This document shows positions 19,775 through 55,478 of a DNA stretch of 64,000 nucleotides, piece after piece. The DNA is taken from the NCBI GenBank assembly GCA_965637545.1, contig OZ281495.1, forward strand, positions 4,154,001-4,218,000, read 5' to 3'. The notes beneath the pieces are model-generated. The model made no database searches. It was not told the DNA's origin and saw only the letters and a list, made by a program, of their open reading frames with translations. A program made the translations under genes and the position numbers. Every line of letters begins with the position of its first letter. Position 1 is the stretch's first letter. The DNA comes from Phallusia mammillata (lineage: Eukaryota).

Positions 19775-21821
19775 ATGTGGTTTATATTTCAAAAGCTATA
19801 CGACTGGTGGGAATCAATAGGCACTGGGGTAATTATGAGCTATAGTTTATTGTGAAGGAAACTAGATTTACTTGAAACTAAGTGAACATAATAACATTTT
19901 AAAAAAGTTTTAAATTGATGCAAAGTGTGTAAAAAAACCCGGAATACTGACCCTCAAAAGAAAAGCCTTTAAAGTTTGCCCAGCTGCAGGCTAAACCTTA
20001 TGATTCCTTTGTCAAGGGAAAAAAGCTTCAGCTTTTAACGCATATAAAATATTTCTTGTGAGCTTTTTTGAAGTAAATTTAATTCACAAACTTTTCTACT
20101 TAGAAGTGTGGCACATGTGAACCGGATAAAATCAGTTGTTATCTGGGTGAAAGAGGTTCACTTGGCAAAGGCGCATTTGCCTGGGTTCGACTTGGACAGA
20201 TGAACAACGAAGATGTTGCGTTGAAGTGTTTCAACGTGAAATCACAGCCACAAGAAATTCAACAGTCATCTAAAACGTAATACCTAACTTAAACCGAAGC
20301 GTATGTCAATAAGTAGATCTCAGTCACTGAATTTAAACACTAATTGGCATTATTAAATTTCACGCACTAGCGAATTTAGGCACCACGCACATGCATGTTA
20401 ATACAGTTAAACATTGACTGAGGTTTATACTGCCCATTAAACTGATTTTATGTTTAGAATTTGGAACGAGTTCGAAATACTTCGGACGGCAGATCACAAA
20501 AACATAATCAAAACATTCGAACTGACACAATGGGATCGAAACAACTGGATGGCCATTGTGATGGAATACTTGCCATGTGGTGACCTTGCAACGTTATTGT
20601 ACCGCACAAGCGATGGCAAAAGCAACCAAAAATGTGTCATCAGCTTTCCTTTGCGTCTGCGATTGATTTATGAGGTCACAAAAGGGGTGGAGTACCTGCA
20701 CCGTGTTTCTAGAGGGAAGTACATCGCCCATGGTGACCTGAAATGTGACAACGTGTTGCTGACAGCAGATCTCAGATGTAAAATTACTGACTTTGGTTGC
20801 GCGGTTTTAGTTAACAGTAATGATGACCCGAATTTATGTGGTATGTGTCCAGTGCAATTTGCCCTCACGCCCACGTATGCTGCACCAGAGCTTCTCACTG
20901 GTAAGTCTCGTTCGTGTAAGGCGACCGACATTTACAGCTTGGGAATGGTTATTCAGACCGTCCTGTTTCGTTTTTCACCATATTCACACATCATTGAAGG
21001 CATATCGCAGCAGGGCCAGATTTATGAAAAGATTAGGTCCGCCGTTTTAAGTGAAACTGAACCGGTTCCTACGGCCCCACTGGTATACGTTGCTATGGAA
21101 GCCACAATGAGCAGGTGCGTCATCTTGTATATTGAAATGGAAAAAGTGGCAAAGGAATGTCGAAGTTACTCACCAAGAAGCCGACCCAGTGTCAATGATA
21201 TCCGTGAACACTTCGGAGAATTACTAGTACAACATTCCCATACAAGAAAGGAGATCCAATCCATTGCGGAATTGCTAAAAGTCGACTCCCACTTATCTCG
21301 CACTGAAACCGAACTCATTCGACTTACAAATTTTTGCCCCGAAAACGGAGGCTTGCTTCCAGGGCAAAGTATCGAAGCTCCATATTCCCCGTCGGAAGGT
21401 TAGTGACAAAAATATTACTACAAACCGCTGTACAAACACATTTCCGGGATTTAGTTAACACATTTAAACTTAGTTCAATAGTGCTTGTTAATAGATTTAT
21501 CAGAGTTAAGTTAACTGCCTTTGTATTCACCTAACTGGTAAAGTAGGTACAGTGTTTATTCTAAAGTCAAACATTATTTGTCACGCGTGTTTGTTAGGTA
21601 TTAGACCGTTTTTAGCTGTTTGTGAAGTAATAAATTTTGCGTAAGATTTTCCACACATAGTGTTGAGTAACACATTTTTCTACAATCAGATGACAAAGGT
21701 GACTTTCGACAAAGTACATCTGGGAGAAACGCACTCAGGCGCCGACCGAATACGAGGCAAACACAACTGCCTGATGTTCCAAGAGAAAACGTTTCCTATC
21801 TACCAAGCTCGCCAGCGGCAG
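19775..21821 (+). CDS. K1: RIPK-like TKL protein kinase (non-RD); terminal exon unresolved
   Basis: Exons 19775-19828 (MWFIFQKLYDWWESIGTG), 20104-20276 (GKGAFAWV, VALK), 20458-21398 (HGDLKCDN, DFG, TPTYAAPE, DIYSLG; donor gttagt, or read-through stop at 21403), 21690-21821 (phase 1-1 tail exon). Confidence 0.85.
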
Positions 21822-22504
21822 GTCGGTGATTAGGTTACAAATCTGACAAAGGCACCAATGTAACAGGGCAAGCATTCTTTTCAGTGGCCTATATATTAGG
21901 TTTAACACAAAACATTCAGAACATTTTTGTAAATATATGAGGCATGACTTTCTAGCCTGTTTCCGTCTTAACGAACTGGAGTGCTGTGTGTTGGATACAC
22001 TAGCAGCCGATACGGTCTATATCTTGTCATCAGCTGCGCTGATTTTGTAGGTCCAAATAGTGTGCATTGTCTGCATATAGCCATTGTTGGGCTTGATACT
22101 TTTACATTTATAAAAGCATTTCCCCTAACTCATAAAGCCCATTTCATGATTTAAAACAGATATGTTTTACTGTTTACTGAGCATGCAACTTTTTGCGTTT
22201 TATTTGGCCGCTATATTTCTCATATTTAAATCCCTTTATTTTATTTAAATTTCTATGTGACTAACCATCTATTATTTCCAATCGCAGGACGAAACTTGAA
22301 TTACAGCTGCCCTGTGATTTTTTTGTTCGTGGTATGTAAGCAAATTCTTGTCCTTAAGCTGATTTAATACTAGGTATTTTAACCGTATTAATTTGTTTAC
22401 AGTTTGCACTTGTACTGATTTTATTGTGGAATCCTTTTCCGCACATTTCCTACCGGTTGTGGCGCTATTAAGAAGCCGTCGCTCTTGAGTCGAATTAGAA
22501 TTAC

Positions 22505-22637
22505 GGAATTGGCTGAATGGTCTGGCGAGGAAATTGGCCGAATGGTCTGGCGCGCCTGACCCATGAACAGACATAAAAACCCTGCTCGGGATTCGTCCCC
22601 GGGAGAGTCCTGGGTTCGAACCCCGTGAAAAACAAAT
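22505..22637 (+). mobile_element. tRNA-Leu/Ser-like short interspersed element; a related degraded copy lies at about 33297-33400
   Basis: Duplicated A-box tggccgaatggtctggcg, B-box gggttcgaacccc, A-rich end; absent at the aligned position of the paralogous block near 32900; no acceptor stem. Confidence 0.5.
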
Positions 22638-23924
22638 ACCTAATGATTTGAATGCACATATGGTCCAGTTTGTTTAATTTAGTTTGCAGTATGTATACGC
22701 GCTATTGTGTTTATAAATTTTAAATGTTTTGCGTGTTGTGATTATTTTATTTTATATGTTTAGGTCATTTTATCGTGTTTGTTACGATAAATCAATAACC
22801 GATGTAATAGTTTCAGTAAAATGTATTTTGTGATGATTACCCTTATTATTTGTGAAAGATAAACGGAGTAACACAACAGTTTATTAAAAGACATGTAAAA
22901 TTACAGGCATTATACGCTGTTTAAACTTTCAACTTTTGTATTTGTTGCACTTTGCTAATCACATACACAGAAAACTCCCATGCAGGTGGTTAGTTGTTTG
23001 CCATTTATATGGCATGAGGTCTTTTTAGATCTAATAAAAACGTATAGTCTTTTCCATGTTCTGACCAGCAAAAAGGCTTGCTCTTACCCCCGCTTGTTCC
23101 AAAAAATGCCGCTAGTGGTAAAGTTGTAAGTCGGGTTTGAATTTCACTTAATACCATATTAGGCTACATTTGTGTCGTTATTCAGTTTTCGTAAAACTTA
23201 CTTTCGGCCCTAATTCGGGCTTTGTTTTAACAAAGTCTTTGGTCCAGGCCAACTTCGGGATTGTACTTTCGGGTTCACATTTTAATTTCAGGCCAGCTTT
23301 ACAACTCCGGCTCATTGGAACCTTCACGTGGAGTAATGGAAAATCTTAAAATTGCAAGATTGCGTTTGGCATATAAGTCATATTTGCGCGAGATCAGATA
23401 CATTTTAAGTATGCCTCCTATTAACTCTAACTACATTTTACATCGTAACTCGGTCATATTTGTTTTGAATTAGTTGATTTGAATAATGCACTGAAATGTT
23501 CGTATAATTTATCATCACAAAAGCACGTACGGGTTATTTCATCAGATTCAACATGCAGCGGTAGCATAGTTTAGACTGCTTGTAAAAATTGAAACTGCCA
23601 GGAATGAAACATGGATGCAAAGTTGCCAATTGTTAGCATTGACGATTGTTTGTTTTTCAGTTTGTGACTTTCGTTACACACCGAGAGGGAACTAGTTGCG
23701 AAACGATCTTTGAAACAGGAACCAAATACACGGGCAGAAGCGTCAGACGAGTATAAATGAAACTTACCTGTACAATGCTTGTCAGTTGGTCAAAGATTTT
23801 ATGCACAAAGAGCACGTGAATTGATGTTATTCCTACATGAATATTAACGTTGGTGTTGCGACCACTACATAGATGGTTTCATTTCAAAACTTTATGATAG
23901 CATTCAGTTCACAGTCGTTGAAGA

Positions 23925-25499
23925 ATGTGGTATATACTTCAAAAGCTATACGACTGGTGGGAATCCATAGATACTGGGGTAATTATGAGTTGTCGTTTAA
24001 TTTGAAGTAAACTAAATTTACTTAAATCTACACTGAACGTTATAATATTTTGATGAAGTTTCTAATTGATGCCGAGTTTGTTAAAAACAAACAAAAAATA
24101 CTAACCCAAAAAAGTAATAGCTTCCAAGTTTGCTTAGCTGCAGGCTAAACCTCAGAATTCTTTATCAAGGGCTAGAAAGCTTCAGCATTTATAGCAGATA
24201 AAAGATTACTTGTGAGCTTATTTAAAGTAAATTTAATCACAAACTTTGTACTAAGGAGTGTGGAACATGTGAACCGGATAAAATCAGTTGTTATGTGGGT
24301 GAAAGAGGTTCACTTGGCAAAGGCGCATTTGCCTGCGTTCGACTTGGACGGATGAACAACGAAGATGTTGCGTTGAAGTGTTTTAATGTAAAATCAAAGC
24401 CACAAGGAATTCCACAGTCTTCAGAAACGTAATTGCTTACTTGAACTGAAGCCTTTTTGTCGATAAGTTACCACATAATTGTAAATGTAGACGCCAGAAA
24501 CTGGATTGAAACACTGTCGACGTTTATATTGCCTGTTAAACTGATTTTGTTTTTAGAATTCGGGATGAGTTCGAATTACTTCAGACGGCAGATCACCAAA
24601 ACATCGTAAAAGCATTCGAGCTGGCCCAATGGGATAGAAACAACTGGATGGCCATTGTGACGGAATACTTGTCGTGTGGTGACCTTGCAACTTTATTGTA
24701 CAACACAAGCGATGGCAAAAGCAACCAAAAATGTCGTATCAGCTTTCCTTTGCGCCTGAAATTGATTTATGACGTCACAAAGGGGGTGGAGTACTTGCAC
24801 CGTCTTTCTGGAGGAAAGTACATTACTCATGGTGATCTGAAGTGCAACAACGTGTTGTTGACGGCAGATCTAAGATGTAAAATTGCTGACTTCGGTTCCG
24901 CGGTTTTTGTGAACATTAATGAGGGTCCGAAGTTAACTGGTGCAAATCCAGTGCAATTTGCCCTTACACCCCACTATGCGGCTCCTGAGCTTCTCAGTGG
25001 CCAGTCTCTTTCGTGTAAGGCGACCGACGTTTACAGCGTGGGATTGATGATGCAGACGGTTCTATTTCGTTTTCCACCATTTTTACACATCATTGAAGGC
25101 GTATCGCAGAGCCAGGATTGTGAAAAGATTAAATCCGCTGTTTTAAGTAAAACAGCACCGGTTCCATTCAATCTACGCTTATACGTAGCTATGAAAGCCG
25201 AACAGAGCGGATGTATGAACTTATTTCTTGAAATTGAAAATGTTGCAAACAAATGTCGAAGTTACTCGCCAATAATCCGACCCCAGATTACTGAAGTCCG
25301 CGAACGGTTTAGGGTTCTACTGGAACAGCATTCCCCTGCAATAGACGAGATCCAATCCATAGCGGAATTGCTAAAAGCCGGCCACCACTTTTCTCGCAAT
25401 AAAACCGAACTCGTTCCACTTACAAGGTTTTGTCCCGAAAACGGAGGCTTGCTTCCAGGGCAAAGCAGTGAAGCTCCATATTCCCCGTTGAAAGGTTAG
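23925..25499 (+). CDS. K2: RIPK-like TKL kinase, closest paralog of K1
   Basis: Exons 23925-23978 (MWYILQKLYDWWESIDTG), 24256-24428, 24557-25494/25499 (HGDLKCNN, DFG, TPHYAAPE); downstream tail exons not identified. Confidence 0.85.
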
Positions 25500-27800: not shown

Positions 27801-30137
27801 ATGGTAAGTAGCGTGGACACGTTTTGGTCTATTTTCGAAAACGCACCTACAAAAAAATAGAAAAGCTCATAAGTGCAGTAAATATAATTCAAAACAGAGC
27901 TATCTAATCAAAGGCCCGGTTCATCAGACAAAGTGGGAAATCTGCAAATAACAATTTACAAATCGTTCGTTTAAATTTTTCGAAACCTGAATTTGAAAAT
28001 TCATGTATGAGATAACAACTGCCATTTGGCATGACATAGCTTTTCCATAAAGCTCAAACGACTTTAGAACATTCTGGCTCACAAACACTACACTACCTTG
28101 TCTATTAATTTAACTGACCCAATAAACCAAATTTATCAATCTTTTTCAGGAGATTGATACTTTCGACCCGAAAAAAATTCGTTGTTACGCGGGTAAAGGT
28201 GGTTTGCTGGGTCGTGGTGGATTTTCCTGTGTTCGACTCGGACGGATGAACGGAAAGGATGTAGCACTCAAGTGCTTTACTCTTACACATCAAAATACAC
28301 GTGACGGGTAAGTTTTACATTTTAACCAATCAGTGACAGGTTAAATAAAAAGACATAAGTAGTTGCTGGAAAAAATGACTCGTGTCTTCGATTCAATAAA
28401 CCTAACATATCAAACATATCTGGCAATTGTATTTTTATACCGACGTTTCGACTACTCGCATTCAGTGTTATTTACCCTGATGAAGGCGACCGGTATAGGA
28501 CGTCGAAACATTGGTATAAAAATACAATTGCCAGAAGAGCTAAAATTTTGATATTATGCCTGGCAGCAACAGCTTATATAAACCTAACGTGTGTTTGTTT
28601 TCAGAATTCGTAAGGAGTTTGAACTTCTTCAGTTGGTACACCACGAGAACGTATTGGGGGCACTCGAGCTTACTGAATGGCGTGACAACATGGCTATTGT
28701 TACCGAATACTCGCCATACGGTGACCTAGCGACGTTATTGTTTGGCAAACGCGAAAGTGATCGACAATGCCACGTCACCCTTCCATTGCGATTGCAGTCG
28801 ATTTATGATGTAACAAAAGGGGTTGCGCACTTACACAATCTTTTTGAAGGAGGTTACGTGGTTCACAGCGACCTAAAGTGCGACAACGTTTTGCTGACCT
28901 TCAATCTTAGGTGTAAAATCTCAGATTTCGGCTGTTCGTTTTTAGTAAAGAGTGATGCAAGCGTGAAGCAAGCAACGCAAGTGCTATTCACCACCGCTTG
29001 TGCCGCACCAGAGCTTTTAAAAGATGAAGCGCATCCATGCAAAGAGACCGACGTCTACAGCGTTGGAATGATGATCAAATCTTTGATTTTTTGTTCTCCA
29101 CCATTTGCACATATTTTTAACAATGTAACCAACCAACAATGTAATGAAGCAGTCGAGAAAGCGATTTTGAGGTAAGTCCGCCAAGAGTTAAATAGCCGGA
29201 CAGGGCTGTTTTGGATTCAATTGAATAAAACGGATTTGATTCAGATTTGAGCCACATCTGTGTCAAAATTCCAGCTTGTAAATCTAACTTCTGGGCCCAA
29301 ATTGGGCTTTCTTTTGATAAAATTGTGGTTCAGGCCCGACACTCTGGCAAAAAATACATGTCAAATTAACATGTTGCATACGAATTGTATATTTCTTGAT
29401 TCGTAGAGCGGAAGTGACGGAGGATACAAATTAATCTTTACATAAAACTTGTTACTAATATTTTCAGGAGAGATTCTCCTGTTGATGATGAACAACGCAG
29501 GCGTGTGTTTCACAATGCTACTATAAAGCAACGTGAATTAGTTGTGGAATTGGAGAATGAGGCTCATAAATGTCTAGAAGTTGATCCGAAAAACCGACCA
29601 CTAATTGCTGAAGTGCACGAAAGTATTTGTAACCTATTGGAAAATCATAATTTGACAGAACAGGATACACGCTTGATCCGAGAGCTGTTTGAATCGAACC
29701 AAAAGTCCCAGAAAAAACTCGGAGAACTTGTTTCGCTTCACCGATTCTGTCCAGTAAACGAAACATTTCTTCCAGGTAAGTAGTTTTACTGTTCAAACGT
29801 AGACGCTTTTAGACGCCAAGTTTAAACGCTCGGTGGCAGAACAAGTTTTTAACAATATTGCTCCCTTTCAGGTGATGAAAAAACGTTAAACAAAACAAAA
29901 ATTACACATATAGGGCAATAGGCTCATATGGATTTTGCAACATCTCTCGGAAATTCACAGATATTAACCAAAATTAAACGCATCCGATATAACTAAATAT
30001 CCGATCTTGTTGTTTATTTTATTCATTTAGATGAGAATCCAGGAAGCAAAACTGGGAATTTAACATCACAAACAAAGATCAAACGCAGGAAAAGTAGCCT
30101 ACAACGCGAAGCCAAAAGGATGAAACTTGAACAGTGA
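27801..30137 (+). CDS. K3: RIPK-like TKL kinase with an extra intron
   Basis: ATG|gtaagt at 27801-27803; exons 28150-28307 (GRGGFSCV, VALK), 28605-29171 (HSDLKCDN, DFG, APE), 29468-29775; tail either 29872 onward (early TAG) or 30031-30137 (basic, TGA). Confidence 0.8.
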
Positions 30138-31759
30138 AAACTTCCTTCTTCCAAACACGTCAGCAGGTGCGTGGTAGGAACAACAATGTCACAAAGAGGT
30201 GTTGCTCACACAAAAGGCCGCGATTCATTACAGAAAATATGTCATTCTGTTACACCATTCTTTGGCAACGCCACGAGATCAATTCATCGTTTTCAGTTTC
30301 ACCATTTTTTAATTTGTTGGGCACAAGCGTACTTTAACTCTACAATAATATTTCTTTTATTCCTGGGGGTGTTTGCAATCAAAGACTGTTGTAGTCTACC
30401 TGAAAGTCTGTAAATTAGGCAACATGCACATGCCAAAAAATCTTCAGTTCTCGCATAAACGATTACAAATTCTGGAAACTATAATACTGGAGACCATTTT
30501 GTATTGTTCTTTCAAGAGATTATTTTACAAAGTCGCCCTAATACCCAAAGTTTTTTGTCTTTCTATGCATAGGTTAGGGTTTAACTTAGAAAATAGTTAA
30601 TCATTTTGTGATTGCAGCAAATTCATCGTAATTGAGTCAACACACATTCGACCCCGTTGGTAAATGGATATGTGGTTAAATAGTCGGATTCGGATGAACA
30701 CCGATTTGATATGAAATTACTTTATTACAATTTATGATGTACAGTATTGGACGTTTGTCCATTTTATTACCGTATGTGTTTTTATGCGCCTTGTTCCAGC
30801 CTGTGAGTTTTTATGATTTTTTATGCTGTTACTTTTTTTGTGCGTTGTTTTGTTTATTCGATGTATAGTGTTCGATTTTGCAAATTGATTTGTAGCAAAA
30901 CCCGTTGAACATTTAAACGTTACAACAGACGGTCAAATATGATCGTTGATTGATATAAACACTAACAACCTATTGTAGCAGAATTGTGTTTTTGTGTGTT
31001 CCTTGCACTTGCATTTTGATGTGAACTGTGCGGCTATTTTAAGAGCTTAGTAAATTAAGTGATATGAGAATGGAATACTTACAGAACACTATATTGTATT
31101 TTCGACCTCTAGTGTTACAAAAAAGACAAGCTTTACAATGGGGCAATACTGCGAAGTTACAAGAAATACGTTCATGTGTTTGGGAAAGGAGAAAGTCGTG
31201 AAAGCTTGAATAAGTTTTTCAAACACCTGCCACAAAATGTTTAACATCCAGATAAAAAGTATAGATGACGATTGTTTGGCTTATGCACTCTTGAGCCGCT
31301 TTTTCTTGTTTCAGCCTGATGTATTCATTTACAGTTTTGGAAATTAGGTGTAGGTGTTGCTTTGATACTATTCTGGTATGTCAAATTAAATGATGATTGG
31401 GCCAATCATTTAGCAGCACTTTTCCTAAGTTTGTTACCGTTTGCATTATCTTGCTAATCATCTTTGTAAACTCTGCCAAAAACTGCAAAATTTATTTCAA
31501 AAGCTTTCATTACTCGAGATATACCCAGGGAAATGGTAAACCAAACACTGTTTGATGATGGAATGTTGCTGGTGGCAGACATGACATGCAAAAGCTACAA
31601 ATATTTCATATGTAAGTAATAATATACGTTTATAGGCAAATGAAAGTGGAAGATCCATTTTGACAGATAAAACCTACACATTTCAATATAGGATAAATAT
31701 ACTTTTAAATTCTTTTTTTTACGGAAATATTTTTTGCTATTCTTTCCCAAAACAATGTG

Positions 31760-33250
31760 ATATTACCCGTTGGAAGGTTAGTTACAATATATTACTTCAA
31801 ACTGCTGTACAAATACATATCCGCGATTTAGTTAACACATTTAAACGTAGTTCAATAGTGCTTATATTTTAAGTTAATAGATTTATTAGAGTTAAAAACT
31901 GCCTTTGTATTCACGTAACTGATAAAGTAGGTACAGTATTTATTCTAAAGTCAAACATATTATTTGTTGCCATATTATTTGTTGCGCATGCTTGTTAATT
32001 AGACCGTTTTTAGCTGTTTGTGAAGTATTAAATTTTGTACACATACCGTTGAGTAACATATATTTCTACAATCAGATGACAAAGGTGACTTTCGACAAAG
32101 CACATCTGGGAGAAACGCACTCAGACGCCGACCGAATACGAGGCAAACGCAACTGCCTGCTGTACTAAGAGAAAACGCTTCCGATCTACCACGCTCGTCA
32201 GCAGCAGGTCGGTGATTAAGTTACAAGTCTGACACAGGCACCAATGTGATAGGACAAGCATTCTATTCAGTGGCAAACGCATTTAGGTTTAACACAAAAC
32301 ATTCCGAACAGTTTTATAAATATATGTCGCATGGCTTTCTAGCCTGTTTCCATCTTAACATACTGGAGTGCTGTGTGATAGATACACTAGCAGCCGACGG
32401 TCTATCTCTTCTCACAAGCTGCGCTGATAGGATTTTGTAGGTCCAAACAGTGTGCATTGTGCACTGCATATAGCCATTGATGGGCTTGATACTTTTACAT
32501 TTGTAAAAGCATTACCCCAACCTCAAAAAGCATATTTTATGATTTGAAACAAATACGTTTACTCTTTACTGAGTATGCATTTTTTTGCATTTTATTTGGC
32601 CGCTTTATTCCTCATTACACATATTTAAATCCCTTTATTTTTTATTTAAATTTCCGTGTGGTTAACCATCTATTCTTTGTAATCACAGGACGAAACTTGA
32701 TTTGCTACTGCCCTGTGATTTTTTTATTCGTGGTATGTAAGCAGATTCTTGTCCTTGAGCTAATTTAATACTAGATATTTTAACCGTATTAATTTGTTTA
32801 CAGTTTGAACTTGTACTGATTTTATTGTGGAATCTTTTTCCGCTCGTTTTCTATCGGTTCGGACGCTACTAGGAAGCCGTCACTTTTGAGTGGAATGGAA
32901 ATTACTGTATAATTTTAAAGTACATATGGTTCAGTTTGTTCAGTTTGTTCAATTTGGTTTGCATGTGATATACGCGCTATCGTGTGTATAAATTGTGACA
33001 GTTTTGCGTGTTGCAATTACTTGAAAAATGTTTTAGTCGTTTTCCGTGTTTGCTACGTATAATATAATCGAGGCAATATTATTTTTAGTAAAATGTATTT
33101 TACACTGTGATTTAAGGAAGATAGACGAGTAACACACTAATTTTTCAAAAAACAAAATATGTAAAATTACAGGCATTGTATGTTATTCAGTTTCCAACCG
33201 AACGTTTTTATTTGTTGCCTTCTGCTATTCATATACACAGAAAACTCCCG
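31760..33250 (+). pseudogene. Orphan duplicate of the K1 3' region (kinase exons missing)
   Basis: Colinear with 21381 to about 22980; starts with the last about 20 nt of the kinase exon (atattacccgttggaag|gttagt) and keeps an open 132-nt tail exon at 32076-32207 (DDKGDFRQSTSGRNALRRRPNTRQ...). Confidence 0.8.
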
Positions 33251-34462: not shown

Positions 34463-37422
34463 ATGGAATCGCCGATGCAAAAAATGTTGCCTCCTGATCT
34501 GTATGAAGATGTTGTGGAATTGGAAAAAGCTTTCTCGATGGAAAAGCTTCAAACCATGACTAACAGTGAAATCCCAACTTGGAAAGGTTTTAGGTTCCCT
34601 CCCCACTTTACACCAGAGCTGGTACAGTTTGCTTACGACAACTGGTCACTGAAAGAAGAAGATGTCCTGCTTGCTTCGTTCCCCAAAACTGGTGAGACTT
34701 GATTGGTCTAATCCTGATATTTACCGGTTAAAACGGCGTTTAAGTTGCAAGATTTTGTAGCATTTTACGTTGTGTAGTACTCATCATGCAATATAGTTGC
34801 TAAACGTGCAAGTTGGTAAGATATTGAATTCGGCTTATTTCCCTTGGTGAGAGCAAACATAGCGACACAAAGGCACTAAACCAGGGGCGTCCAACACGAA
34901 AGCACCGCCGTGCCAATCTAGGTTTTAAAATATACCCTCGTGCCAACGTTTGCTAGGCCTACTTTTTCCAAACCATGTCTTAAACGTCTTAACGGTAGAA
35001 AAAAATATGTTGTCAAACGCGAGTACGGAGTAAACTTGTTTACGATATTTCAGAAACCTTTTATAACATACCATGTTGTTTAAAGGGCAGAATCCATAAT
35101 ATGGAATATAATACGACAGCATAAAGGCCCGGAATTATCCAGAATTCGACAGTTTCAAGCGCCTCAAAGTAGACGAATCGAGTCTAAAAACGACCAATTT
35201 AATTAGTGGATTTGTGTAACCTTGATACTGATCATCTTTACTAAAGTTAGAATAAAAGCCAAAATGAATCCATAGAAACATAATAATTGCGTGACAAATC
35301 CTAATGTTTACCATCTGAATGTCCAAAAATTGCGTGCCATTTTCAAATGCTCTGCGTGCCACTTTTGGCACGCGTGCCACGTGTTGGACACCCCTGCACT
35401 AAACAGTAACCAAGCCGAAAACAGCAGCACAACGGTAAAACGTTATGGAGAGCAAAATGTGGATGACATAATTGGTCGACATTGGCTGAACGCGCTGCTG
35501 CTCTGTTACTACAAATGTGAGCCCCCGTTATGTAGCCGTTGAGATTGGGGGAAGTTAAAAGAACCATACTGGGGACTAATAGGAAACTACTAAAACTCTA
35601 CACCATATCTTTACTGGAGATAAATCTTTCATAAAAACAACGTCACCTGTGTAGGTACGAATTGGATGATTACAACCTTACGTCGCCTTTTGTACAACGA
35701 GGAGGAATTAGATTTGGTTAAAGACCTTCCTATGAGCTTGACATTGCTTGAAGCTGGTGGAGGTGAGATTGGGTTGAATATCGTTGTTTCTTTGCAAATT
35801 TATCATTCTATCTTGGCTACATGTTTCTGCGCAGGCAAGAAGCTCGACATACTTGACATACCGCCTTCCGATCAACCGACGAATAATCTCGACCCACATG
35901 CCAGCAGAACTAATCAACCTCGAGAAGATAAAGGAAAATTATGCGAAGGTAAAAAATATTCTGCTGTTTGCAGGGTTCAGCTGCAGACCGGCTACAGTAT
36001 TTACAGCTTGCATCCAGTCGGAAGTTCATATTCCAAACCAGAACATGTTGTTGAACATTCTACACAGAACTTTGACTCCCAACGTTGAAACATTCCGTTG
36101 CCTGCTTGTTGCAAACAACAAATCTTTTCTACATAAACCTGAGTTATCAACTTAATACCAGGTTTTCGTATGTCGAGTAAACTGTTCAAACGAAATAAGC
36201 AATTACCGGCTTAAGAAAGGGTTGGGAAATTGGAGGGACATCGGCACCCCAGAGTTAGTTATTTCGATCATTCTATTAAAACGTTACATATACCAGAAAA
36301 TGATTGTTTCATGTAAACTCACAGGCCTGACAGTGTATTCCGCCTAAATAAAACACACAACTTCTAAAAGTTACGTCGTGGGCTGTACAAAAACTCCAAT
36401 ACTGCTTGTGAATGTGTTGAGTCTTTGCTTGCTCAAAACGTTTGCAGAAAAAATGGCAGAAATTTACCACGGATTGATTTTTATCGCTAGGTGGTGTGCA
36501 TGATGCGGAACCCAAAGGATCAATTGGTTTCCTGGTATCACTTCTCACAGAAACTTTTTGGCAAAAATCAAACAATGGGAGAAATGGTCAACAATGGCTG
36601 GGAGAAGTTTTTTAACATCGCCGTTAATGGTACGAATAATGACGTAATTAGAGTAAATTCGTAACTTCAACATTCAATTATACACTGAGTGACATTTATT
36701 TTTTAATTTAGCATAATTTAAGAAATATTAATGCGAAGTCAATTTCCAAGCAAGGTTTTTTGATTTTCTGTGACCTGCTTGTTGCTCTTTAGGTAATCTC
36801 CCGTCAGGTACTTTACCTGGTGAATGGTATCCGCACCATCTTCTCTCCTGGTACAAACATAAAGATCATAAAAACTTTTATTTCGTCTATTACGAGGATT
36901 TAAAGAAGGTTTGTTTGGTTGAAATGTTGTTCTGAGTTCGATCAGAACGTTCGTGTTTAAATGCAGGACTTCAATAAGGAACTCTGCAATCTTGCGGAAT
37001 TCCTGGGCGTGGAAATAACGGAAAAACAAGCTTCGAAAATCGAGGAAAAGTGTTCGTTCGGAAACATGAAACAGGATATCTCGTCGTATTCCAATAACGC
37101 GAAAATGTTTCAAGCTGCTAATTTGCGTAAAGGTCAGTTGCTGTGATGATGTAAATGTTTGATGACGTCATTGTGCGGTGAATGATGTCAAGATACATAA
37201 GTTAAGGTGAAAAAATGTAACGGTTGTCTCCATAATAGATTAGGGTAAATGGGGGATTTTGCTCCAATCTTCTAACAAATTTGTTTAGCCTAATGTGATT
37301 TTTATTTAGGCGAAGTTGGTGATTGGAAAAATTATTTTACCGTCGCCCAATCGGAACTTGTTGATCAGAAAATCAAAGAATGCCTCGGTTCAACTGACGT
37401 CACATTCACCTATTGTTTGTAA
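34463..37422 (+). pseudogene. Cytosolic sulfotransferase (SULT family) with an apparent +4/+1 frameshift in exon 35835-35948
   Basis: Exons 34463-34691, 35655-35762, 35835-35948, 36491-36629, 36793-36908, 36967-37132, 37310-37422. Motifs FPKTGTNW (5'-PSB), RRIISTHMP, RNPKDQLVSWYHF (3'-PB), YYEDLK, RKGEVGDWKNYFTVAQSE. The third coding exon is 114 nt but its flanking phases need length 2 mod 3. Confidence 0.8.
34882..35396. mobile_element. hAT MITE in SULT intron (515 bp)
   Basis: TIRs caggggcgtccaacacg / cgtgttggacacccctg; 8-bp TSD cactaaac on both sides. Confidence 0.9.
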
Positions 37423-38814: not shown

Positions 38815-41800
38815 ATGGGGGTAAATATGTTTGTTCATGTAAACTATCAAAAACAAAGATTATTCAAACGATTAAAAATCGGATTTAAATACAACTGATA
38901 TAAAGAAAAAATAGCAAAGATATTGACAGATGTGGTAAATTTATGTTGTACCCTTACCACACATCATGAAAAAGTCACTTGGTAACTGTTAAATTAGCTG
39001 CAAAACATGTTGGATTTTAATAAAAAATAAAACCACAAACAACACCTAAAATATGAGAATTCAACCCGCAACAGAATATAATTTCTTATTTGGTTACTAA
39101 ACTTTGACTCCCAACTTTATTGTGTAATAGGAAGTTCAAACATGCGAACCAGACAAGATCAGTTGTTATCTCGGTAAGAGCGGCTTGATTGGCTACGGCG
39201 GATTTTCCTCTGTCTGGCTCGGAAGAATGGACAACAAGGATGTTGCAGTAAAATGTATTAATGTAACGTCAGGACCCGAAGGAATTCTACATACCAAAAA
39301 ACGGTACGTTGCTTATTATAACTTAAAACAGTAACATGGTGTAAAAGATAGTGAACCAGGCCTAGCGAAGGCGTTAAAACGATTTGGCTGGTCACCAAGC
39401 ATTCCCACATATGGCGGGGCAATAGGCGAACCGATTTGTATATTAGTATGCCGTGATCGTTGGTCTTCGGGTACGCTTCAGGATTGATTCGAGTAATGAT
39501 TTTTTGATCATCGTATAAACGCAAAAACTATTGCATTATACAACCATACCACGCGTCACCGAATTTGGGCACGTCGCGCAAGTTAATACAAGTCGGTTAA
39601 ACATTGACTGGTGTTTAAACTGCCCGTTTAATTGATTTCAATTTTAGAGTTTTGAAAGAGTTCGAATTGCTTTGGAAGGCAGATCACGAAAACATCGTAA
39701 AAGCATTCAAACTGACGCAATGGGATAGAAACAACTGGATGGCCATAGTGACGGAATACTTGCCCTGCGGTGACCTTGAGAAGTTATTGTTTGACCCAAG
39801 CTACAGAAAAACGCGAATCAGCTTTCCTTTGCGTCTGCGATTGATTTATCACGTCACAAAAGGGGGGTATTTACACAATCTTCCTGAAGGCGGTCACGTG
39901 GTTCATGGTGACCTAAAGTGCAACAACATTTTGCTGACGGTCAATCTTACGTGCAAAATTGCAGACTTCGGCAGCGAGTTTTTGGTAAACAGTGATGACG
40001 AAGAAGGGCATAAAGGCACGCATGTTCCGTTTACAATAACTTATGCTGCTCCGGAGCTTCTCACTGAAAAGGTGCTTCCAAGCACATTGACTGACGTCTA
40101 CAGCGTAGGTTTAATAGTAGAGGCCGTACTGTTTCGTTCTTCTCCATTTTCACGTGTACTAGAAAGTCCACCCAGCACCAATCATGTCGAATGGTTAAAG
40201 GCGGCGGTGTTAAATGAAACACCATTTCCTAAAGAGCTATGCACACTGGTACACAACGAAGCAAACGTAATGGGATACACAGATTTAGTTGTTGAGATCG
40301 AAGCCGAGGCGAAAAAATGTCGGAATCAAATGCCGAATGACCGTCCACAGATTACACATGTCCGTGAAAAATTTTGCTCTTTACTGGAGAAATATTCCCC
40401 AAAGAGACAGGACATACAAGCGGTCAGTAAGATGCTGAAAGCTGGACCCAAATCTGCCCGAGATGAAACCGAGTTAGTTCCGCTATCTCGGTTTTGTCCC
40501 GCAAACATGGGTGTGTTTCCAAATCGACACATCGATATTCAGCAGTCAAAGATTACAAGAAGAGGAAAAAAAGCTGGGGGACGAAAGAAGCAATCGAAGA
40601 AACAAGTTAAAAAAGCGATATTACAAAGATTGTCATTGGGTACGTGACAAACCTTGAGCGTGCCATGCTAATATTTAAAACATGTCAAATATCGTTCGAA
40701 TATCCTTACTTCATTGGCTCACTTTATACGTCGAGTAAATAAATACAAGGCTATTTATTACAGAATATGACGAATGCTTATTGCCCTTTTTATGAGATTT
40801 TAATTACATTTTGCAAAATTCAGTGTGCGTTGATGATAATCTGGATCAAAAACAAAGTGCGACAGGAAAAGATTTGGAAGCTGCACCAAGAAAAAACAGA
40901 CAACGCGCAGCAGAAAAGAGTGACGCTTATACCCACGAAATTGAAATTCATACCAATAAATCTTCTACTTCCCCAAAATTACGAGCAGGTCAGTAATAAA
41001 ATTTCAACATTCGCACCAAATCACCCGGTAGTGCAGATTTGTCAGTTTAAAAATGCGATAGAAGTAAACTTGGTACCTTGTTCAAATCTTGCACGTAACG
41101 CGTTGATTTTGTTGTTTAAAAGTTTCATCCAAATTGCATTTACTTTACATTGCGTTCAAGTTGTCCTTAAATATTGGCCTGATCAAGTAAATAATTCCAA
41201 GCTTTTTTCGACAGAAAATGACGAACTTCCACTCAAAGAGTTGTTGCAATCTGACCGTCGCCCTGTTAAAGATCACAAAGAGGTTGTTTCACTTGATAAA
41301 CCCACTTTTGAAGGTAACACAATAATTCTGTGGTGATAATGTTGAGCAAAACTAAAGTGAGGCAACAGGAAGAAATTGACATCAACACTTTCTTCACTTT
41401 GCCATTGAGTTTTTCTTTAATGTTGACCCGATTAAATCGTCCAGCAAATAACTCTGGGATTGCTTTCTTCAGAGAATGTAAAGCGCTTCAGTGTGGAGGC
41501 ATCGCAGCCCGAACCTCACCCTGTTGAAAAAGACAAAGAAGTCATTCTGTGGGACCAACAAAGCCCTGAAGGTAAACATATTCTAAGCTTCTTTTCTATC
41601 ACTTTGACAAGTATTAATTTCACATATTTTTAAATTTTGCCTACCGCACTGACTCTTCAACTGATTTAGATAAGTGATAAAAATTCACCTGTGACACAAA
41701 AATGTTGGTTGATATAATTTAAACTAAAAAAAACATTAAAAAAATAACGAAAACCCGTACTTGGCCTCACAATTTGTTTTTAACGTTATTTATTCGATCT

Positions 41801-42863
41801 TTTTAGAGTCAGCGCAACGTATCCCTTTCATACAAAGCTTGCCGTCAACAGGTTAGTGATGGGTCAAATACGAAACGAAACAAAAGCAAAGAATAAAACG
41901 TCGCACAAAATAGATTTACAGCAACGAATCGACCGTGTTTGATTTATTTCTTTTTAGTCTTCTTGCGTCAGATTTACAATCTACTGCAGATTCAGTGTGT
42001 TTGGTTGACGATCCCGGCACCCGACAAGTTGTAAGTAAGGAGAAAAAATTGTCACCAACATCAACCATAAACAAAAAACTTGGAGAGGATAAAATTACAA
42101 CAGAAGACACTCATGTGTTAGTCCAAACAGACAGCGTCCCCTCTACACAAGCTGCAACAGCAGGTGGGCAGTTAAAGTAAAATAATAAAAAATCACACAC
42201 ATATTCAGGAACAAACGATTGCATCACTTGTAAAAAAATATGTCTATTCATGACGCCCATCTCTGAAAAAATTCGACATTGAAAAAATAATCGTCATTGA
42301 CATAAAAACAACTATTAAACCGAAGTATCTGTTTGTGCTTCAAAGACACGTGTTTTTTTTAGTACATTTGGATGAGAATCTTGGCAAAGATCAACAAACA
42401 GGTGTGGTTAGTATGGAGGCATTGCAAACTAAAGTGGAAACTAATATAAGACATAGGAATAGGAAAAACGCAAGACAACGCCACCAGTTTGACGTTTCAC
42501 CAAACAACATTTGCTCGTCAGCAGGTTAGTAGTAAAATTTGAATCAATAAAGAACCTTTAGAAACACTGCTTGTAAATAGTTATTGCCTATAATTTTGAA
42601 CAACCTATATGAACTGATTACCGCGTTAATAGTTTTTTGACCAAATTAATGCACAACTGTTTGTGGTGTAATTACATATTTTCAGATAATTGCACATTTG
42701 GAATGTTTAGATGGGACACCCAGCATCAGAAGAAAACAAAACAGCAAACGGCAAACAAAGACCAAGGGAAATGAAAAACACAGCAGGAAAATTAATACAA
42801 CACAGAACAAACGGGCCAAAGCGAAGAGAAATAAAAATTCCTCATTGCATACCCCGTCAGCAA
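38815..42863 (+). CDS. K4: RIPK-like TKL kinase with a long multi-exon basic/low-complexity tail; last exon unresolved
   Basis: ATG GGG|gtaaat at 38815-38820; exons 39131-39303 (GYGGFSSV, VAVK), 39648-40639 (HGDLKCNN, DFG, TITYAAPE), then phase 1-1 exons 40824-40988, 41215-41313, 41473-41571, 41807-41851, 41972-42163, 42363-42524, 42711-42863, all open. Confidence 0.85.
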
Positions 42864-44010
42864 GTTAGTGAAAATCGTCATTAAAACACAATAACATTCG
42901 TGCACAAAGGGCAGTGACTGATTTCAGTAAACATGCCGTGGATTTGCACTGGTTTGGGTAGTTTTATGGCCACGATTTAAAGGTCTTTCTGCACTAGTAC
43001 CTCGCCAACTGCAAACCTAGTAAATTTTGCATTAAGGGTTCTGTACAATTGTGCACTATTAATAAACAGCACAGTCACAGACTGACAGAAAAAAAAACTA
43101 ACTTAAAATATCTACACACAGTTTAAAAAATAACCGACAAATTTTAATTAAAACATGTTACTAATTTTTATATAAAATAAAAACTTATTTGTGATTGCAG
43201 TATCAACCGTGAGATGGTCTGTTCTGATCCGGATAACCTTAGTAAGTAACCTTATGTTTCACCCTGCAATGACAATGATTCTAACCGACTGAGTTACTGA
43301 ATTACAGGTTGCCTTTGTATTGGTTCTAATATGGATACTTGGTCAACGGGATTAGAATTTGCCTCCAGAATGTTTAGTCAAGCAACAGAATTCTGTGAAT
43401 TACTATGTTTTCAGCCCTTTTGACAAATGCATCATGTGACATAAAAATATAACAACCAATTTCATGTACTTCAATATTGGCCTGTAACAATCGTGAAAGA
43501 CACGAAGCAATGACGTCAAAAATGAAGCACCTATAACTGTATCAAAAAGAGTGCAGTGCACAACTGTAGATCCGCATAGTTCATCTTTGACGTTTTACCA
43601 AATTTTGGTATGGTTCCTGATTACGTATTTGGCAAATCCCCGTTTTATAAACAATTAATAAACAACATAATTGTTAACAATTTTAAAAATTAAAAAAGTT
43701 GAGAAAATCAGCTTATTAGTCTGCGAAAACAAGTTTTGACTTGCCGAAGATGAAACCTGTTTACTTATAAACTGTTTTAATTTTGCGTCATTAAAAATTC
43801 TCGTGTAAAACGTTTGTTCAATGCTTATCACTTAATTAATAAAAATAACCTATATTGTGTGCCAAATCAACTGGCAAAAAAAGGATTTAATTTTAAGGTG
43901 CGTTGTATTTCTGTGCAATAGCTTCTTGTTTTTTATCACTCACTTAATTAATAAAAATAACCTTAATTATCTATTGCAAAACGTCCTAACAAAATGACCA
44001 TGTTCTAGTG

Positions 44011-44374: not shown

Positions 44375-44787
44375 CCGTATTTGCTCGATTATAAGCCGCG
44401 GCTTATATTGTTTTTTAGCTGCCGTTTGTGCGGCTTATAATCGAGGGCGGCTTACAATCGAGGGCGGCTTATATTTTAATTCTATACCGAAATCATTTCT
44501 ACACTCCAACATCTTAAATTTTTTGGGGTTCAAAACATGTATGCGTGTACAGATTATACGTCGATATACGTTCTGTTGGGTACACTTATCAACGTAACTA
44601 ACAGATATGGGCAAATAGTCATACCATATAACTACAGAAAGATGTATAAGGAAACAATTGTATCTCATATTCCAGCGTGCGTCTTACAATCGGGGGCGAC
44701 TTACATTATTTTTTTAACACCTCAACATGCGGCTTACAATCGAGGGCGGCTTATAAACGAGGGCGGCTTACAATCGAGCAAATACGG
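44375..44787. mobile_element. Tc1/mariner (pogo-like) MITE, 413 bp
   Basis: TIRs ccgtatttgctcgattataagccg / cggcttacaatcgagcaaatacgg flanked by TA; internal repeats ggcttacaatcgagggcggc. Confidence 0.85.
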
Positions 44788-50660: not shown

Positions 50661-52150
50661 ATTGTGTTTGGCAGTTTTCTTCAGTACAAAGTGAAGTTGT
50701 GCAATTTGTATAGACAGGTTGGGCTGGGCAAAACCAGATTACACGGTATCAAGCATGCTGTTTTCAATGCTCAGTGCTTGGACAAGTAGTAAATGCGCTA
50801 GATGGTGGGACAGACACCCTTCTGGGGTATGTGAGCCTAATACTTGATCGTGACAATTGAACCTTGAAAAGCTGCAAAACTAGCATGGATTTGGAAATGT
50901 TTGTGACATCACAATGCACCAAGTGTGCCCTGCTGAGCAGCAAGGATCAACATGAGAAGCTGGGTAACCAAACAGAACATTTGCAATTTTAGCAACTTCC
51001 TAGGAATTTGTACTTTATTTTTATTCCTCTTCAATCTTTACTGACGTTTTACCTTCTTACAAATCTACTGCACTGTCCTCACTGCAATCCAGTATTGTAC
51101 CTTTCTTCCTTATTTAAAAAAATCTGTAGCTGTGTTAAGCCTTTTTTGCGGGTTTCTTGTTTACTTGTCATTTTTGATGTGTTTGACATTTGTTTACCCA
51201 ATCTCATGGCACTAAATTTAATAGATTTACATTATTATAAAACAATATCTTTTAGGTGAGTCCAGTTTATAGTCAGGGAGTACAAAGCATAAATGCAGAA
51301 AGGACAAGACTTAAAAAAAGAAATACAATTTTGTGGAATTACTGTTTAACAATTTTTTAAGGGTTTAAAAATGTGCAAACAATCTGACAATTTTACTTCA
51401 GAATTTTGTGTTCTATAGTTCAGTTTTGTAAACCTTTATCAGACATTGCAGACCTGCATTTCAGTGCAGCTGGCGATAGGCGGTATTATCTAGTGTAGCG
51501 AGTTATTTAAAACCCATATGTGACTGAACATAGGAAGTGGTTCAAGTATTATTGCTTCCCTTATTAAGTTTAATACGATCCGAAGTAAAACTACACAAAT
51601 TGTAAGATGACAAATTCGGGGTAAGTTGTTATTGTCAAAATAGACATCTGAGAGTAATAGTTTATAACCACTGTAAAAACGACTTAAAAACGAGTCTTTA
51701 ATACACACAAAATATAACAGCAACAGTAAACGTAAATTTACAGTTAGGGGATTTACCATATGGTAGTTTTTACTGTTTTGTGACTTAAAAATCGTAGGGT
51801 GTTCCAAATCGTACGTAATATGTTGAGTACAAATTGACTCTGGCGAATCCGACCAACACAATATAATTCCAACCTGTTAGTGAAAATGTCAAAAGTTACT
51901 GACATAAATGCCAACAATACGATGTCTATTATTCGCACAGTTGGTAATATGGATTTCATGACGCCACCATTGTTATTGACAAAACAGGAACCAAATGTAA
52001 AATGATCTCAATACAGGAACTAGCCTTTGCAGTTAGACTTTCAGCGTTTATTATTAATGTTTAAAGCCAGCGGGTAATGTCTTCTTGCCAGACAAACGAG
52101 TAAACTTAAATTGGGTTTGTTTCATTTTGCTTGACTAACAACAAATGCTA

Positions 52151-52240
52151 GCCTTGCGTGTTTTTCAAACTCAGTCACTCCCTGCCTTGCGTGTTTTTTA
52201 AACTCAGTGACTGCCAGCGAGTTTTTCAAACTCAGTGCTG
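52151..52240 (+). repeat. Three imperfect 27-33-bp tandem units
   Basis: gccttgcgtgtttttcaaactcagt-type unit at 52151, 52184 and 52214. Confidence 0.8.
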
Positions 52241-52772
52241 TTCCAGATCCAGTAGCTGGTGTGTACCGTTTTTTTAGTAAAAGTTAGCACAGCAAAACAA
52301 TCGGTAGTTCTGGGTTGAACGTGCAGCGGTAGTCAGAATGTGTGATGATCTAACTGTTAGATCATTATGAGATGTTATACGACGGGAATAAGGTAAAATT
52401 GTGAGACTAAGTTACCAGGGATATATCCTAACCATTCTTAGCAGATTTCGGTTTCAAACCCCAACTTTACAAAACAGAAACCCGATGAGGCGTAAATATT
52501 AATTTACTACAACTGATTGAAATGAGAGCCGACGTTTAGCAAACCTTAATGTACAGCTACGACTAAGATATTAAAGGAAGGGACAATCTAACTTTGTTGG
52601 TTACTACAAAACGGTTATTCATTTGAATTTTTTGATTTGACTGTTACATACGACTAGCAAGTTACCTTTAAATATTTTCACGCAAACAGGCATAACATAT
52701 TCTTAGACATTTGAAATGGTTATACATTTTACTGGATGAGAAAATCATTATGAACAGACAACATAGTTAATC

Positions 52773-55478
52773 ATGGAGGTAAATATAAAACAAAAACACC
52801 GTTATTTTGTATAGCTCTGCTTTATTTGTTAGTCTGCTTGTCATCTTAACTCAACTCGTTGCAAATCAATTGAATTAAGAATAGTTTGGTGGTTTACCCC
52901 GGTTGAATTAATTTGTACTTAAAACATGTCTAGAACATCACAGGTCCATTACAGAAGTGATGAACGTAAGGTCACTACTTTATCCATCGATATAAAATCC
53001 GTTTCACTTTCATGAATTTAAATATGAAAGATGAAACATAATTCTTACCATTAGTTGATAAACGGTGGTAAATGGTAAAAAATGCTTAACGTCAAAACTA
53101 CCTAGTTATAGACCTATTCGAGCTGTGTTATATTACTTTGTATTTTAAATTGGCTACTAAACTAAACATATTACTTTTGCGTGTAGGGGTTTGAGAGCTG
53201 CCAACCTCATAATATATATTGTTACGCCGGCAATCGAGGTTTACTCGGCAAAGGAAAATTTGGTTTTGTCCGACTCGGGCAAATGAACGGCAAAGATGTT
53301 GCACTGAAATGTTTTAACCTGAAATCAAGACCATTAGGAGTTTTACTAACACCAGAAACGTACGTGGGTTTGTTTTGTAGCTTAATCCGTAGTTAATCAA
53401 TGGGAACGTGGGCTGAACACGGAAGTACGTCGAACCGCAGATAAACTGTGGCTAGAGTGTGCTGTGCTGACAATAAATACTACGTCTTGCGAAATACAAT
53501 GACCAAATAGACCTACTATTTGGTAGCCTGCAATGAAACGTCCCACCGAAGGCTTGTACCTCATTAGTGATGAAGTATGCCACTTTTTAGGTCATAATAA
53601 GGAATTGCATTATTCATTAGTTTATAGTTATATGAGCCATGGTTTGACTTATTGGTCAATAGGATCATCTATGTATAACTAAGCAGCATTGCCTTAATTT
53701 TTAGAATTTCAAATGAGTTTGAGTTGCTTTCCACGACACACCACGAAAACGTTGTAAAAACATTCGGGTTAACGCAATGGAATGAAAACAATTGGATGGC
53801 GATTGTGACGGAATATTTGCCCTGCGGTGATCTTGCATGGTTTTTGTATGGCACAAGCGATGGTAAAAGCAAAAATTATGACATCAGCTTTCCTTTGCAA
53901 GTACGACTAATTTATGACGTTACCAAGGGGGTGGAGCATTTACACAATCTTCCGGGAGGAGGTCACGTGGTTCACGCAGACTTGTCATGTAACAACATTT
54001 TACTGACCGACAATCTTACATGTAAAATTGCTGATTTCGGCAGTGCATGTTATTTCAGTGATGATAAGCAAGAAAACGGAAAGAAAGTCCCATTTCCAGT
54101 CAGTTTCTCTGCCCCTGAACTTGTCAGTGACATGGCATTCCCAAGCAAGCAGACAGACGTCTACAGCGTAGGTACGGTTATCCAGACTGTGCTTTACCGG
54201 TTTCGGCCATTTTCACACATTTTGTATGGCCCTCCAGTTAGTCGCGAGGAAGCTAATGCCGTAGTTTTAAACAATGCACCATTTCCTGATGATGAACGTA
54301 CGCTTGTCCGTAGTAAAGCCAAACAACAGGGATACACGGATTTGTTTACTACGATTGAAGCAGAGGGAAACAGATGTCGAAGTCAAAGGCCAAATGACCG
54401 CCCACAGATTACTGACGTCCGTGAAAAATTTGGCTGTCTACTTAAAAAACACTACCCTACAGGGGACGAAATCCAAACCATTGTGAAGTTGGTAAATTTT
54501 CAAGGAACTTCAGATGAAACTAAACTCGTTCCACTTTCAAAAGTTTGTCCGGAAGATGGAGGTTTACTTCCAAATCGAAATGGTAAGCAACGACCACAAA
54601 TTAAGAGAAAAGGAACGAAAAACAATGGAGTGTGTAGGAAGCGAGTAGCAAGTCATACCAAGGTGTCTATATCTTCTAAAACATCGTCGACAGGTAGGTG
54701 TTAAACAGTCAGCAATAAATCAGGGGCCTAATCTTTGACAATATCGTCCATATTTTATTAAGATTGTCCGCATTGACTAAGAAAGTCACTACAAACTGTG
54801 TGGTGTCAATGAATTTAAAGTTAGTTTCATGCCTCTTTTCGAAATACATGACACACAAAAAAGTATAAGGAGCATGGAACTTTTGTCAGGTCAGGAGAAG
54901 ATAATTGACAGACACAGAAGAATTACAAGACAAAGCCAACAAAGGAAACAGCCAGCAGACAACACATCTACCTTACATACCTTGTCAGCAGGTCAGTAAA
55001 AAACAATACCAGGGTCACAAAAGATATTCGCTCACAAAAGGTAATTTGATAAGCATGTCTTTTTGTAGCTTGTTACGATTATCCAAGAACAATTACATTT
55101 TATATTTTTATTAGTTTTTGAACAGAATGCTTGCAAACACCGAGTCCAACTTCAAAACGGTTTAAATGTTCCATTCAAGATGGGCTGCAAAGAGAGACGA
55201 AAGAAAAATCCCTTTTACAAGGTCAGTTCAAAAGTAACAATAACAAATCCGTCCAATGAAGCTTAGATACATAAAGTAACACATAGTACCAAGATGTAAA
55301 ATAGAAAAAAATGGTTTATTTAGAAAACTAGCCAAACAGGTGATTTATGTTTAATGATTAAGATTATATTTTGAGGCTACTGTATTTAACCTGGATTATG
55401 TGAATTTGCACTTGTTTTAGTACAAACGCTTCTTTACTTTTACTCTTGTGTTATTTAGGCGCCACTGGTAATGCATAA
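52773..55478 (+). CDS. K5: RIPK-like TKL kinase with an atypical catalytic loop
   Basis: ATG GAG|gtaaat at 52773-52778; exons 53187-53359 (GKGKFGFV, VALK), 53705-54693 (HADLSCNN, DFG, PVSFSAPE), 54890-54991, 55126-55221; tentative last exon 55459-55478. Confidence 0.8.

Follow-up and report, generated by a model that had tools for sequence, protein, structure and literature searches.

A tandem array of RIPK-like non-RD kinases with predicted C-terminal membrane anchors in the ascidian Phallusia mammillata

RIP kinases are central switches of inflammation and cell death in vertebrates, where they are defined by the death-fold, RHIM or ankyrin partners attached to the kinase domain. Activation without phosphorylation of the activation loop is usual for non-RD innate-immune kinases. 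Other described systems combine signalling with a membrane: MAVS is a tail-anchored CARD protein without a kinase, VRK2A is a tail-anchored kinase (VRK2 belonging to the CK1 group), and the plant receptor-like cytoplasmic kinases (RLCKs) are offshoots of RLK/Pelle, a vastly expanded family of immune kinases that is sister to IRAK. Vertebrates have their nearest living relatives in the tunicates, whose immunity is innate only. Here we describe five tandem kinase genes, K1 to K5, in a window of 64,000 nucleotides of the genome of the ascidian Phallusia mammillata (C2:4154001-4218000 of a 240-Mb assembly; positions without a contig name are those of the window). With a probability of roughly two in three, K1-K5 make up one half of a clade of 12 genes, restricted to the lineage, that encode stand-alone RIPK-like serine/threonine kinases, among which K1-K4 bear a predicted tail anchor.

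A tblastn search of the whole window with the two kinase exons of K1 had exactly five copies as its only matches, all collinear and on the + strand, and each large exon matched the Pfam Pkinase model with a score well above the cut-off (E values from 1e-23 to 4e-35). A first-pass annotation of this DNA had proposed such a five-copy array, beginning at 19775, and both points stand, the latter position being the ATG of K1. Motif inspection also agreed with its description of the shared core: VA(L/V)KC, which includes the catalytic lysine, and the LRLRLIYEVTKG-type helix are present in all five copies, and the catalytic loop reads HGD in K1, K2 and K4, HSD in K3 and HAD in K5, that is, without Arg before the catalytic Asp in any of them (the non-RD state). 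Two other shared traits vary between the copies. The TCEPDKISCY-type motif ahead of the G-loop occurs as an exact CEPDKISCY in K1, K2 and K4 and reads FDPKKIRCY in K3 and CQPHNIYCY in K5. The common exon layout of a G-loop exon and a large exon needs one correction, as an additional intron (29172-29467, AG/GTAAGT ... ttttcag/, with slashes for exon borders) interrupts the large exon of K3 and leaves the frame open. The G-loop, VAxK lysine, helix-C Glu, HxD Asp, LKxxN Asn, DFG and APE are all kept in K1-K5. By sequence, the five are apparently catalytically competent non-RD kinases. Their pairwise amino-acid identity is 48-71%, and the ratio of nonsynonymous to synonymous substitution rates (dN/dS) lies between 0.22 and 0.50 in all pairs tested, with the lowest value across old splits.

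The array is one part of a larger set. In the tree, the K clade comprises 12 copies, is supported at 100/100 and has a stem of 1.47 substitutions per site within an ascidian family; five of these copies lie in the window and seven in a segmental duplicate that has been rearranged (C2:4.296-4.343 Mb, ~80 kb beyond the window end), where the counterparts of K1-K5 are marked by a prime. The description of the array as five-membered is therefore right for the window and too narrow for the clade, which occupies two duplicated arrays. The K clade shows the traits of the ascidian family, namely a small G-loop exon followed by a large kinase exon, I(S/K)C ahead of the G-loop and VPLxxF after the kinase. 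In the wider family the residue before the catalytic Asp is G, Q or A. The genome-wide copy count proposed in the first-pass annotation was carried out with the K1 large exon and gave at least 125 scored matches of 277 candidates; the copy number of the family here is well above one hundred. In the main kinase cluster, in the C2 2.6-3.4 Mb region, many family members score identically at regular spacing (e.g. 3030943, 3145495, 3273339), a pattern suggestive of large segmental duplications of very recent date, or perhaps of assembly redundancy.

Among public proteins, an exhaustive search collected 358 relatives at E < 1e-30 and found no member of the K clade. The closest single-domain hits, at ~150 bits, were Clavelina proteins, one of them with a GBP domain before the kinase, and another close hit was a Phallusia mammillata kinase-Kelch protein, to which one locus of the present genome shows 96% identity. 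A word-index protein search with the K1 large exon had listed only miscellaneous kinases of 30% identity, the relatives being longer than its length window or sharing too few words. In full-text literature searches, neither this family nor any tail-anchored RIPK-like kinase was found described. The other ascidian clades (the Phallusia kinase-Kelch protein P0265, the Clavelina GBP-kinase P0246 and the TPR-tailed genes of this genome) have the same two-exon kinase layout and share with the K clade the pre-G-loop xxI(S/K)C, the non-RD loop and a VPLxxFxxxTGxF-type motif, forming one family in the tree at 29-35% identity to the K clade. Where they read DLKPxN and CW, the K-clade sequences read DLKC(D/N)N and CR. 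Moreover, the K clade lacks the Kelch, TPR or GBP parts and is the only one among the clades examined with a hydrophobic end.

With regard to classification, the best label is "RIPK-like TKL kinase" (TKL, tyrosine kinase-like), which is reasonably supported by score ranking and fold and implies no orthology to a single RIPK. A profile of the K clade ranked RIPK2 first in the PDB (88 bits), followed by the plant kinases CTR1 (79) and SOBIR1 (76) and by RIPK1 (70). The profile of the wider ascidian family scored RIPK1 and RIPK2 at 160 bits each, RIPK4 at 141, IRAK4 at 126, RIPK3 at 119 and TAK1 at 118, with the tyrosine-kinase chain 7t6f (143 bits) just above RIPK4. The AlphaFold (AF2) model of the K1 large exon adopts a kinase fold (predicted local distance difference test score, pLDDT, 82), with the conserved C-terminal motif disordered, and its top Foldseek hit is RIPK2. 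The two profiles and the fold comparison thus support the RIPK-like reading of the first-pass annotation, the placement being by score ranking. For all these comparisons the G-loop exon lay outside the fold model and the profiles, searches were run exon by exon, and joined proteins served to check frame and stop. Vertebrate RIPK2, RIPK1 and RIPK4 are the best solved matches to the K clade by profile and fold; RIPK1 (HKD) and RIPK2 (HHD) are non-RD as well, and RIPKs share with the K clade a helix after the kinase and the TKL-type signatures of kinase subdomains IX and XI, where DxYSxG and C...P..RP are signs of the group.

The kinases might instead represent a separate TKL lineage, or even another group, with generic TKL features behind the match to RIPK2. 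Such a view would account for the result of K1 alone, which among solved structures finds MARK2, then NEK2 and only then RIPK2, as well as for a Pfam Pkinase score of K1 above that of PK_Tyr_Ser-Thr, for the very long stem of the K clade and for a clade-profile margin over CTR1 and SOBIR1 of only ~10 bits. We consider it quite improbable in view of the full-support nesting within an ascidian family that shares exon layout, pre-G-loop motif and C-terminal VPLxxF, the advantage of 15-34 bits that RIPK1, RIPK2 and RIPK4 hold with the family profile over the other Ser/Thr kinases listed (IRAK4 and TAK1), the first rank of RIPK2 in Foldseek, and the TKL-like DxYSxG and C...P..RP of the K clade.

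Several features separate the K clade from RIPKs, beyond an identity to RIPK2 of ~24%: no death domain, CARD or ankyrin was found and no RHIM core was seen, a predicted C-terminal anchor stands in place of these modules, and the genes form tandem multicopy arrays. The lack of death, CARD and ankyrin domains had been noticed from the letters of the window, and it is borne out by model searches of the genome, by Pfam on downstream reading frames and by the K1 transcript. When six-frame translations of the entire genome were searched for Death, CARD and Ank_2, there was no match in or near the window on C2, and Pfam on 20 + strand open reading frames (ORFs) behind K3, K4 and K5 gave none above cut-off, so that neither search found downstream exons encoding a death or CARD domain. 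In the case of K1, the first exon of K2 begins ~1.2 kb on, too close for a repeat or death-fold domain to fit in between, and the K1 transcript stops after the anchor. An IQIG-type core, as in RHIM, was not seen by eye in the tails; a search with a RHIM model carries no information, as its control matched nothing anywhere. The partners of related clades were sought in the window by tblastn with the TPR-type tail of locus L039, the Kelch part of P0265 and the Clavelina N-terminal parts (one with GBP), and none matched below E 0.19. Elsewhere in the genome, at C4:3428763-3429796, CARD and Death matches lie ~600 bp apart on the same strand and may mark a CRADD/RAIDD-like adaptor gene.

The structure of K1 was read from a 1822-nt contig of the RNA-like run X1, which is ~96% identical to K1 and spans five GT..AG introns. 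X1 and X2 are sequencing runs of the same species, the RNA label of X1 being a guess; the DNA run X2 covers the K1 region but shows none of the five joints, and the contig is therefore taken as processed RNA. It presumably comes from another K1 allele, and its sole insertion relative to the assembly is of 3 nt and keeps the frame. The spliced product of 470 residues consists of an 18-residue leader, the kinase, one helix, ELIRLTNFCPENGGLLP, a basic linker of ~45 residues and the end ...YSCPVIFLFV/FALVLILLWNPFPHISYRLWRY; the large exon closes with the phase-1 donor GAAG/GTTAGT. The K1 3' untranslated region holds an element (22486-22684) that reaches a depth of up to ~500,000 in the DNA run, is very deep in the four runs examined and has many unrelated flanks, as in a very high-copy dispersed repeat of the SINE (short interspersed nuclear element) or MITE (miniature inverted-repeat transposable element) type.

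The tails of these kinases had been regarded as only of low complexity, a view that is incomplete, since K1-K4 close in a conserved hydrophobic segment encoded by two exons. The best 19-residue Kyte-Doolittle means are 2.56 (K1), 2.68 (K2), 2.74 (K3) and 2.73 (K4), and these hydrophobic windows end 13, 2, 14 and 3 residues before the stop, respectively. The leaders of K1 and K2, of 18 residues each, have no hydrophobic core. Tail-anchored proteins carry one hydrophobic stretch of ~18-22 residues within roughly their final 30-50 residues and lack an N-terminal signal peptide. K1-K4, and not K5, display such a hydrophobic segment near the C-terminus, in K1 and K2 together with a leader that is no signal peptide, and the segment is predicted to be a tail anchor. 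When the five tail regions were compared with tblastx, only the ELVPL...LLP motif and a K1/K3 tail duplication were shared. The two small exons, separated by an intron of 64-75 nt, recur behind K3 (88% identity, plus the linker exon) and as diverged cassettes behind K2, where the cassette aligns with that of K1, and K4, and each copy keeps the cag/ acceptors and gta[at]gt donors. Joined to the phase-1 donor of the large exon, the anchor exons give in-frame models for K2, K3 and K4. In the duplicate array, homologous two-exon cassettes also follow K1', K2', K4' and L010, the cassette beside K3' is an orphan, and a further one behind L005 was recovered at E 0.016 by a hidden Markov model (HMM) built without it. 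Altogether the cassette is kept in nine places, including paralogues with a kinase-exon dS > 1, a divergence which argues that it is being maintained. In K5, an anchor was sought by hydropathy and splice signals in three scans and with an HMM of anchor exon 2, and only a remnant without acceptor was retrieved. Between K4 and K5, an ORF end at 49848-50015 encodes a clean hydrophobic segment with basic residues and a stop (...WVAGIVIVVVIAASAFGCIVWCKVSK...); hydrophobic ORF ends of this interval, this one among them, have no homology to the anchor cassette.

Several observations weigh against the reading of K1-K5 as RIPK-like kinases that are mostly tail-anchored. A charged residue falls inside the segment in K3 (one Glu) and in K1', and the K4 segment has an Arg near its start; the older cassette copy of L005 is broken, and that of K5 is lost, with K5' in the same state of acceptor-less remnant. 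The anchor is predicted from hydropathy and conservation, RNA support is limited to K1, as a single contig of ~96% identity from a run with a guessed RNA label, and start exons for K3, K4 and K5 were sought and not found. The RIPK placement, in turn, is a score ranking with a ~10-bit clade margin. Some of these points would suit soluble, kinase-only proteins, whose hydrophobic end is a buried or degron-like tail or enters a minority of transcripts: Glu or Lys stands within the segment of K3 and K1' and Arg in that of K4, K5 and K5' have lost the cassette with their kinase ORF intact, AT-rich DNA often contains reading frames for hydrophobic stretches, and inclusion of the anchor is documented by a single transcript contig. 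We hold this alternative to be unlikely, given that cassette, splice sites and hydrophobic character are kept in the nine places mentioned, even at dS > 1, and that the K1 and K2 segments are uncharged and, like their counterparts, end 2-14 residues from the stop as tail anchors do.

Signs of decay are also found. In the duplicate array, K4' (locus L007, C2:4326826-4330725) shares 98% identity with K4 and is interrupted by a single in-frame TAA at ~position 2050 (RVL*SPPST for RVLESPPST), as a very young pseudogene or nonsense allele, and K3' is truncated. Together with the decayed anchor of K5, dN/dS values of up to 0.5 and transposons inserted in and around the array, these could indicate that the array is a decaying, mostly non-functional by-product of segmental duplication, the working members being the domain-bearing paralogues. 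This appears highly improbable: all five window copies have open frames and every catalytic residue, dN/dS is below 1 in all comparisons and falls to 0.22 across old splits, and one allele of K1 gives rise to a correctly spliced transcript in which the frame is preserved, also across the 3-nt insertion. The array is real, transcribed (in the case of the K1 allele) and selectively maintained, and its function is predicted from sequence.

For a clade of stand-alone kinases with predicted tail anchors, the following picture may be drawn. The clade is nested in a much larger ascidian-specific expansion, in which other clades carry partners of the TPR, Kelch or GBP type. The protein plan consists of a short leader, the complete and apparently active non-RD kinase, one helix and the family-wide motif ELVPLxxFCPENGGLLP, followed by a variable, basic and disordered linker from phase-1 exons and, in K1-K4, by the hydrophobic segment from two small exons. 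This segment would be inserted after translation as a tail anchor, leaving the kinase to face the cytosol on an organelle membrane, for instance that of the endoplasmic reticulum (ER) or the mitochondrial outer membrane, and activation might occur by clustering on the membrane instead of activation-loop phosphorylation. K5, its anchor lost, would represent a soluble derivative. Similar layouts are found in MAVS and VRK2A, in which a cytosolic signalling domain is followed by a disordered linker and a single hydrophobic segment within ~15 residues of the C-terminus, also without a signal peptide, although neither is related in sequence to the K proteins, whose membrane insertion is predicted only. 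In the plant RLCKs (BIK1, PBS1) we find, by analogy only, kinase-only proteins, tethered to membranes and often non-RD, that evolve fast and have multiplied by tandem duplication, like the K clade, but their tether is N-terminal lipidation as opposed to a predicted C-terminal helix.

An immune-signalling role for the K clade is a guess that draws on family resemblance and fast tandem evolution. One step further, and doubtful in our opinion, the K proteins could be membrane-resident signalling hubs on the ER or mitochondria for a large repertoire of sensor-fused RIPK-like kinases, activated by clustering and playing a MAVS- or RLCK-like part; if so, the sister group of vertebrates would have evolved, on its own, a platform of innate immunity based on kinases. 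More generally, a RIPK-like kinase has been multiplied to more than a hundred copies and combined with many modules, the module being in this case a predicted membrane anchor. Should the anchor work, the array would offer a simple and testable case of a signalling kinase re-targeted by two tiny exons, and an entry point to a gene family of immune type, as yet undescribed, in a chordate that is amenable to experiments.

The gene models are collected in Table 1. The K2 model has no linker exon; its anchor exons encode ...PEEWPIVVWLII/FSLILIAIWIPSQL*, so that the protein ends in ...IVVWLIIFSLILIAIWIPSQL, and an upstream 5' exon (23726-23802) is matched by the 5' end of the K1-like X1 transcript. 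The K3 tail block is 88-92% identical to that of K1. The large exon of K4 closes in a Lys/Arg-rich stretch, its anchor exons encode ...VRWSVLIRITL/VAFVLVLIWILGQRD* (protein end ...LIRITLVAFVLVLIWILGQRD), and 41161-41313, 41972-42163 and 42363-42524 are possible extra phase-1 exons; the second anchor exon matched the motif profile at E 1.3e-08, being itself among the sequences that built it. In K5 the large exon has two candidate phase-1 donors.

Table 1. Coordinates of the kinase genes and neighbouring features in the window.
Feature	Position	Strand	Basis
K1 exon 1, 18-residue leader	19759..19828, ATG 19775	+	X1 contig joins 19827/8 to 20103/4, GT..AG intron
K1 G-loop exon (CEPDKISCY, G-loop, VALKC lysine)	20104..20276	+	
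K1 large exon, helix C to kinase end, further helix, ELIRLTNFCPENGGLLP	20458..21398	+	Pkinase 3.9e-35; transcript joint 21396/8 to 21688/90
K1 linker exon, 132 nt, phase 1 to 1, basic and disordered	21690..21821	+	transcript contig
K1 anchor exon 1 (...RNLNYSCPVIFLFV)	22288..22331	+	transcript joints 21817>22284 and 22330>22402
K1 anchor exon 2 (FALVLILLWNPFPHISYRLWRY)	22403..22471, stop TAA 22469-22471	+	transcript, hydropathy
K1 coding exons	19775-19828, 20104-20276, 20458-21398, 21690-21821, 22288-22331, 22403-22471	+	
K2 gene model, 415 aa	23925..26135	+	all junctions GT-AG, frame open
K2 exons	23925-23978, 24256-24428, 24557-25494, anchor 25989-26026 and 26091-26135	+	
K3 gene model	28159..32872	+	in frame, GT-AG
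K3 exons	28159-28307, 28605-29171, 29468-29775, linker 32076-32207, anchor 32689-32732 and 32804-32872	+	
Cytosolic sulfotransferase gene, multi-exon, unrelated, between K3 and K4	34463..37146	+	Pfam Sulfotransfer_1 7.7e-07 and 3.2e-06, exons 36491-36661 and 36961-37143
K4 gene model	39131..43355	+	in frame with or without optional exons
K4 exons	39131-39303, 39648-40639, anchor 43201-43241 and 43308-43355	+	
K5 kinase exons, basic tail, HAD loop	53187-53359 and 53705-54582 or 54693; ORF stop 54702-54704	+	
K5 anchor exon 2 remnant (FALVLVQTLLYFY...), without AG acceptor	55405..55455	+	
4.8-kb transposon insertion, not part of the kinase genes	55704..60500	+	gap in alignment to duplicate array

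The K4-K5 gap and the stretch after K5 hold repeats. Within the transposon insertion, an ORF at 56469-57782 (437 aa) shows weak similarity to tnp2-type transposases (Pfam Transposase_21, 5.2e-05, below cut-off). The sulfotransferase gene was duplicated together with K4, at ~95% nucleotide identity. Directly upstream of K1, the block at 10000-18000 has 44-50% G+C against a background of 32-39%; it is absent from the duplicate array, where the alignment jumps from ~9.9 kb to ~17.9 kb, and on first reading it is a candidate BEL-type retroelement.

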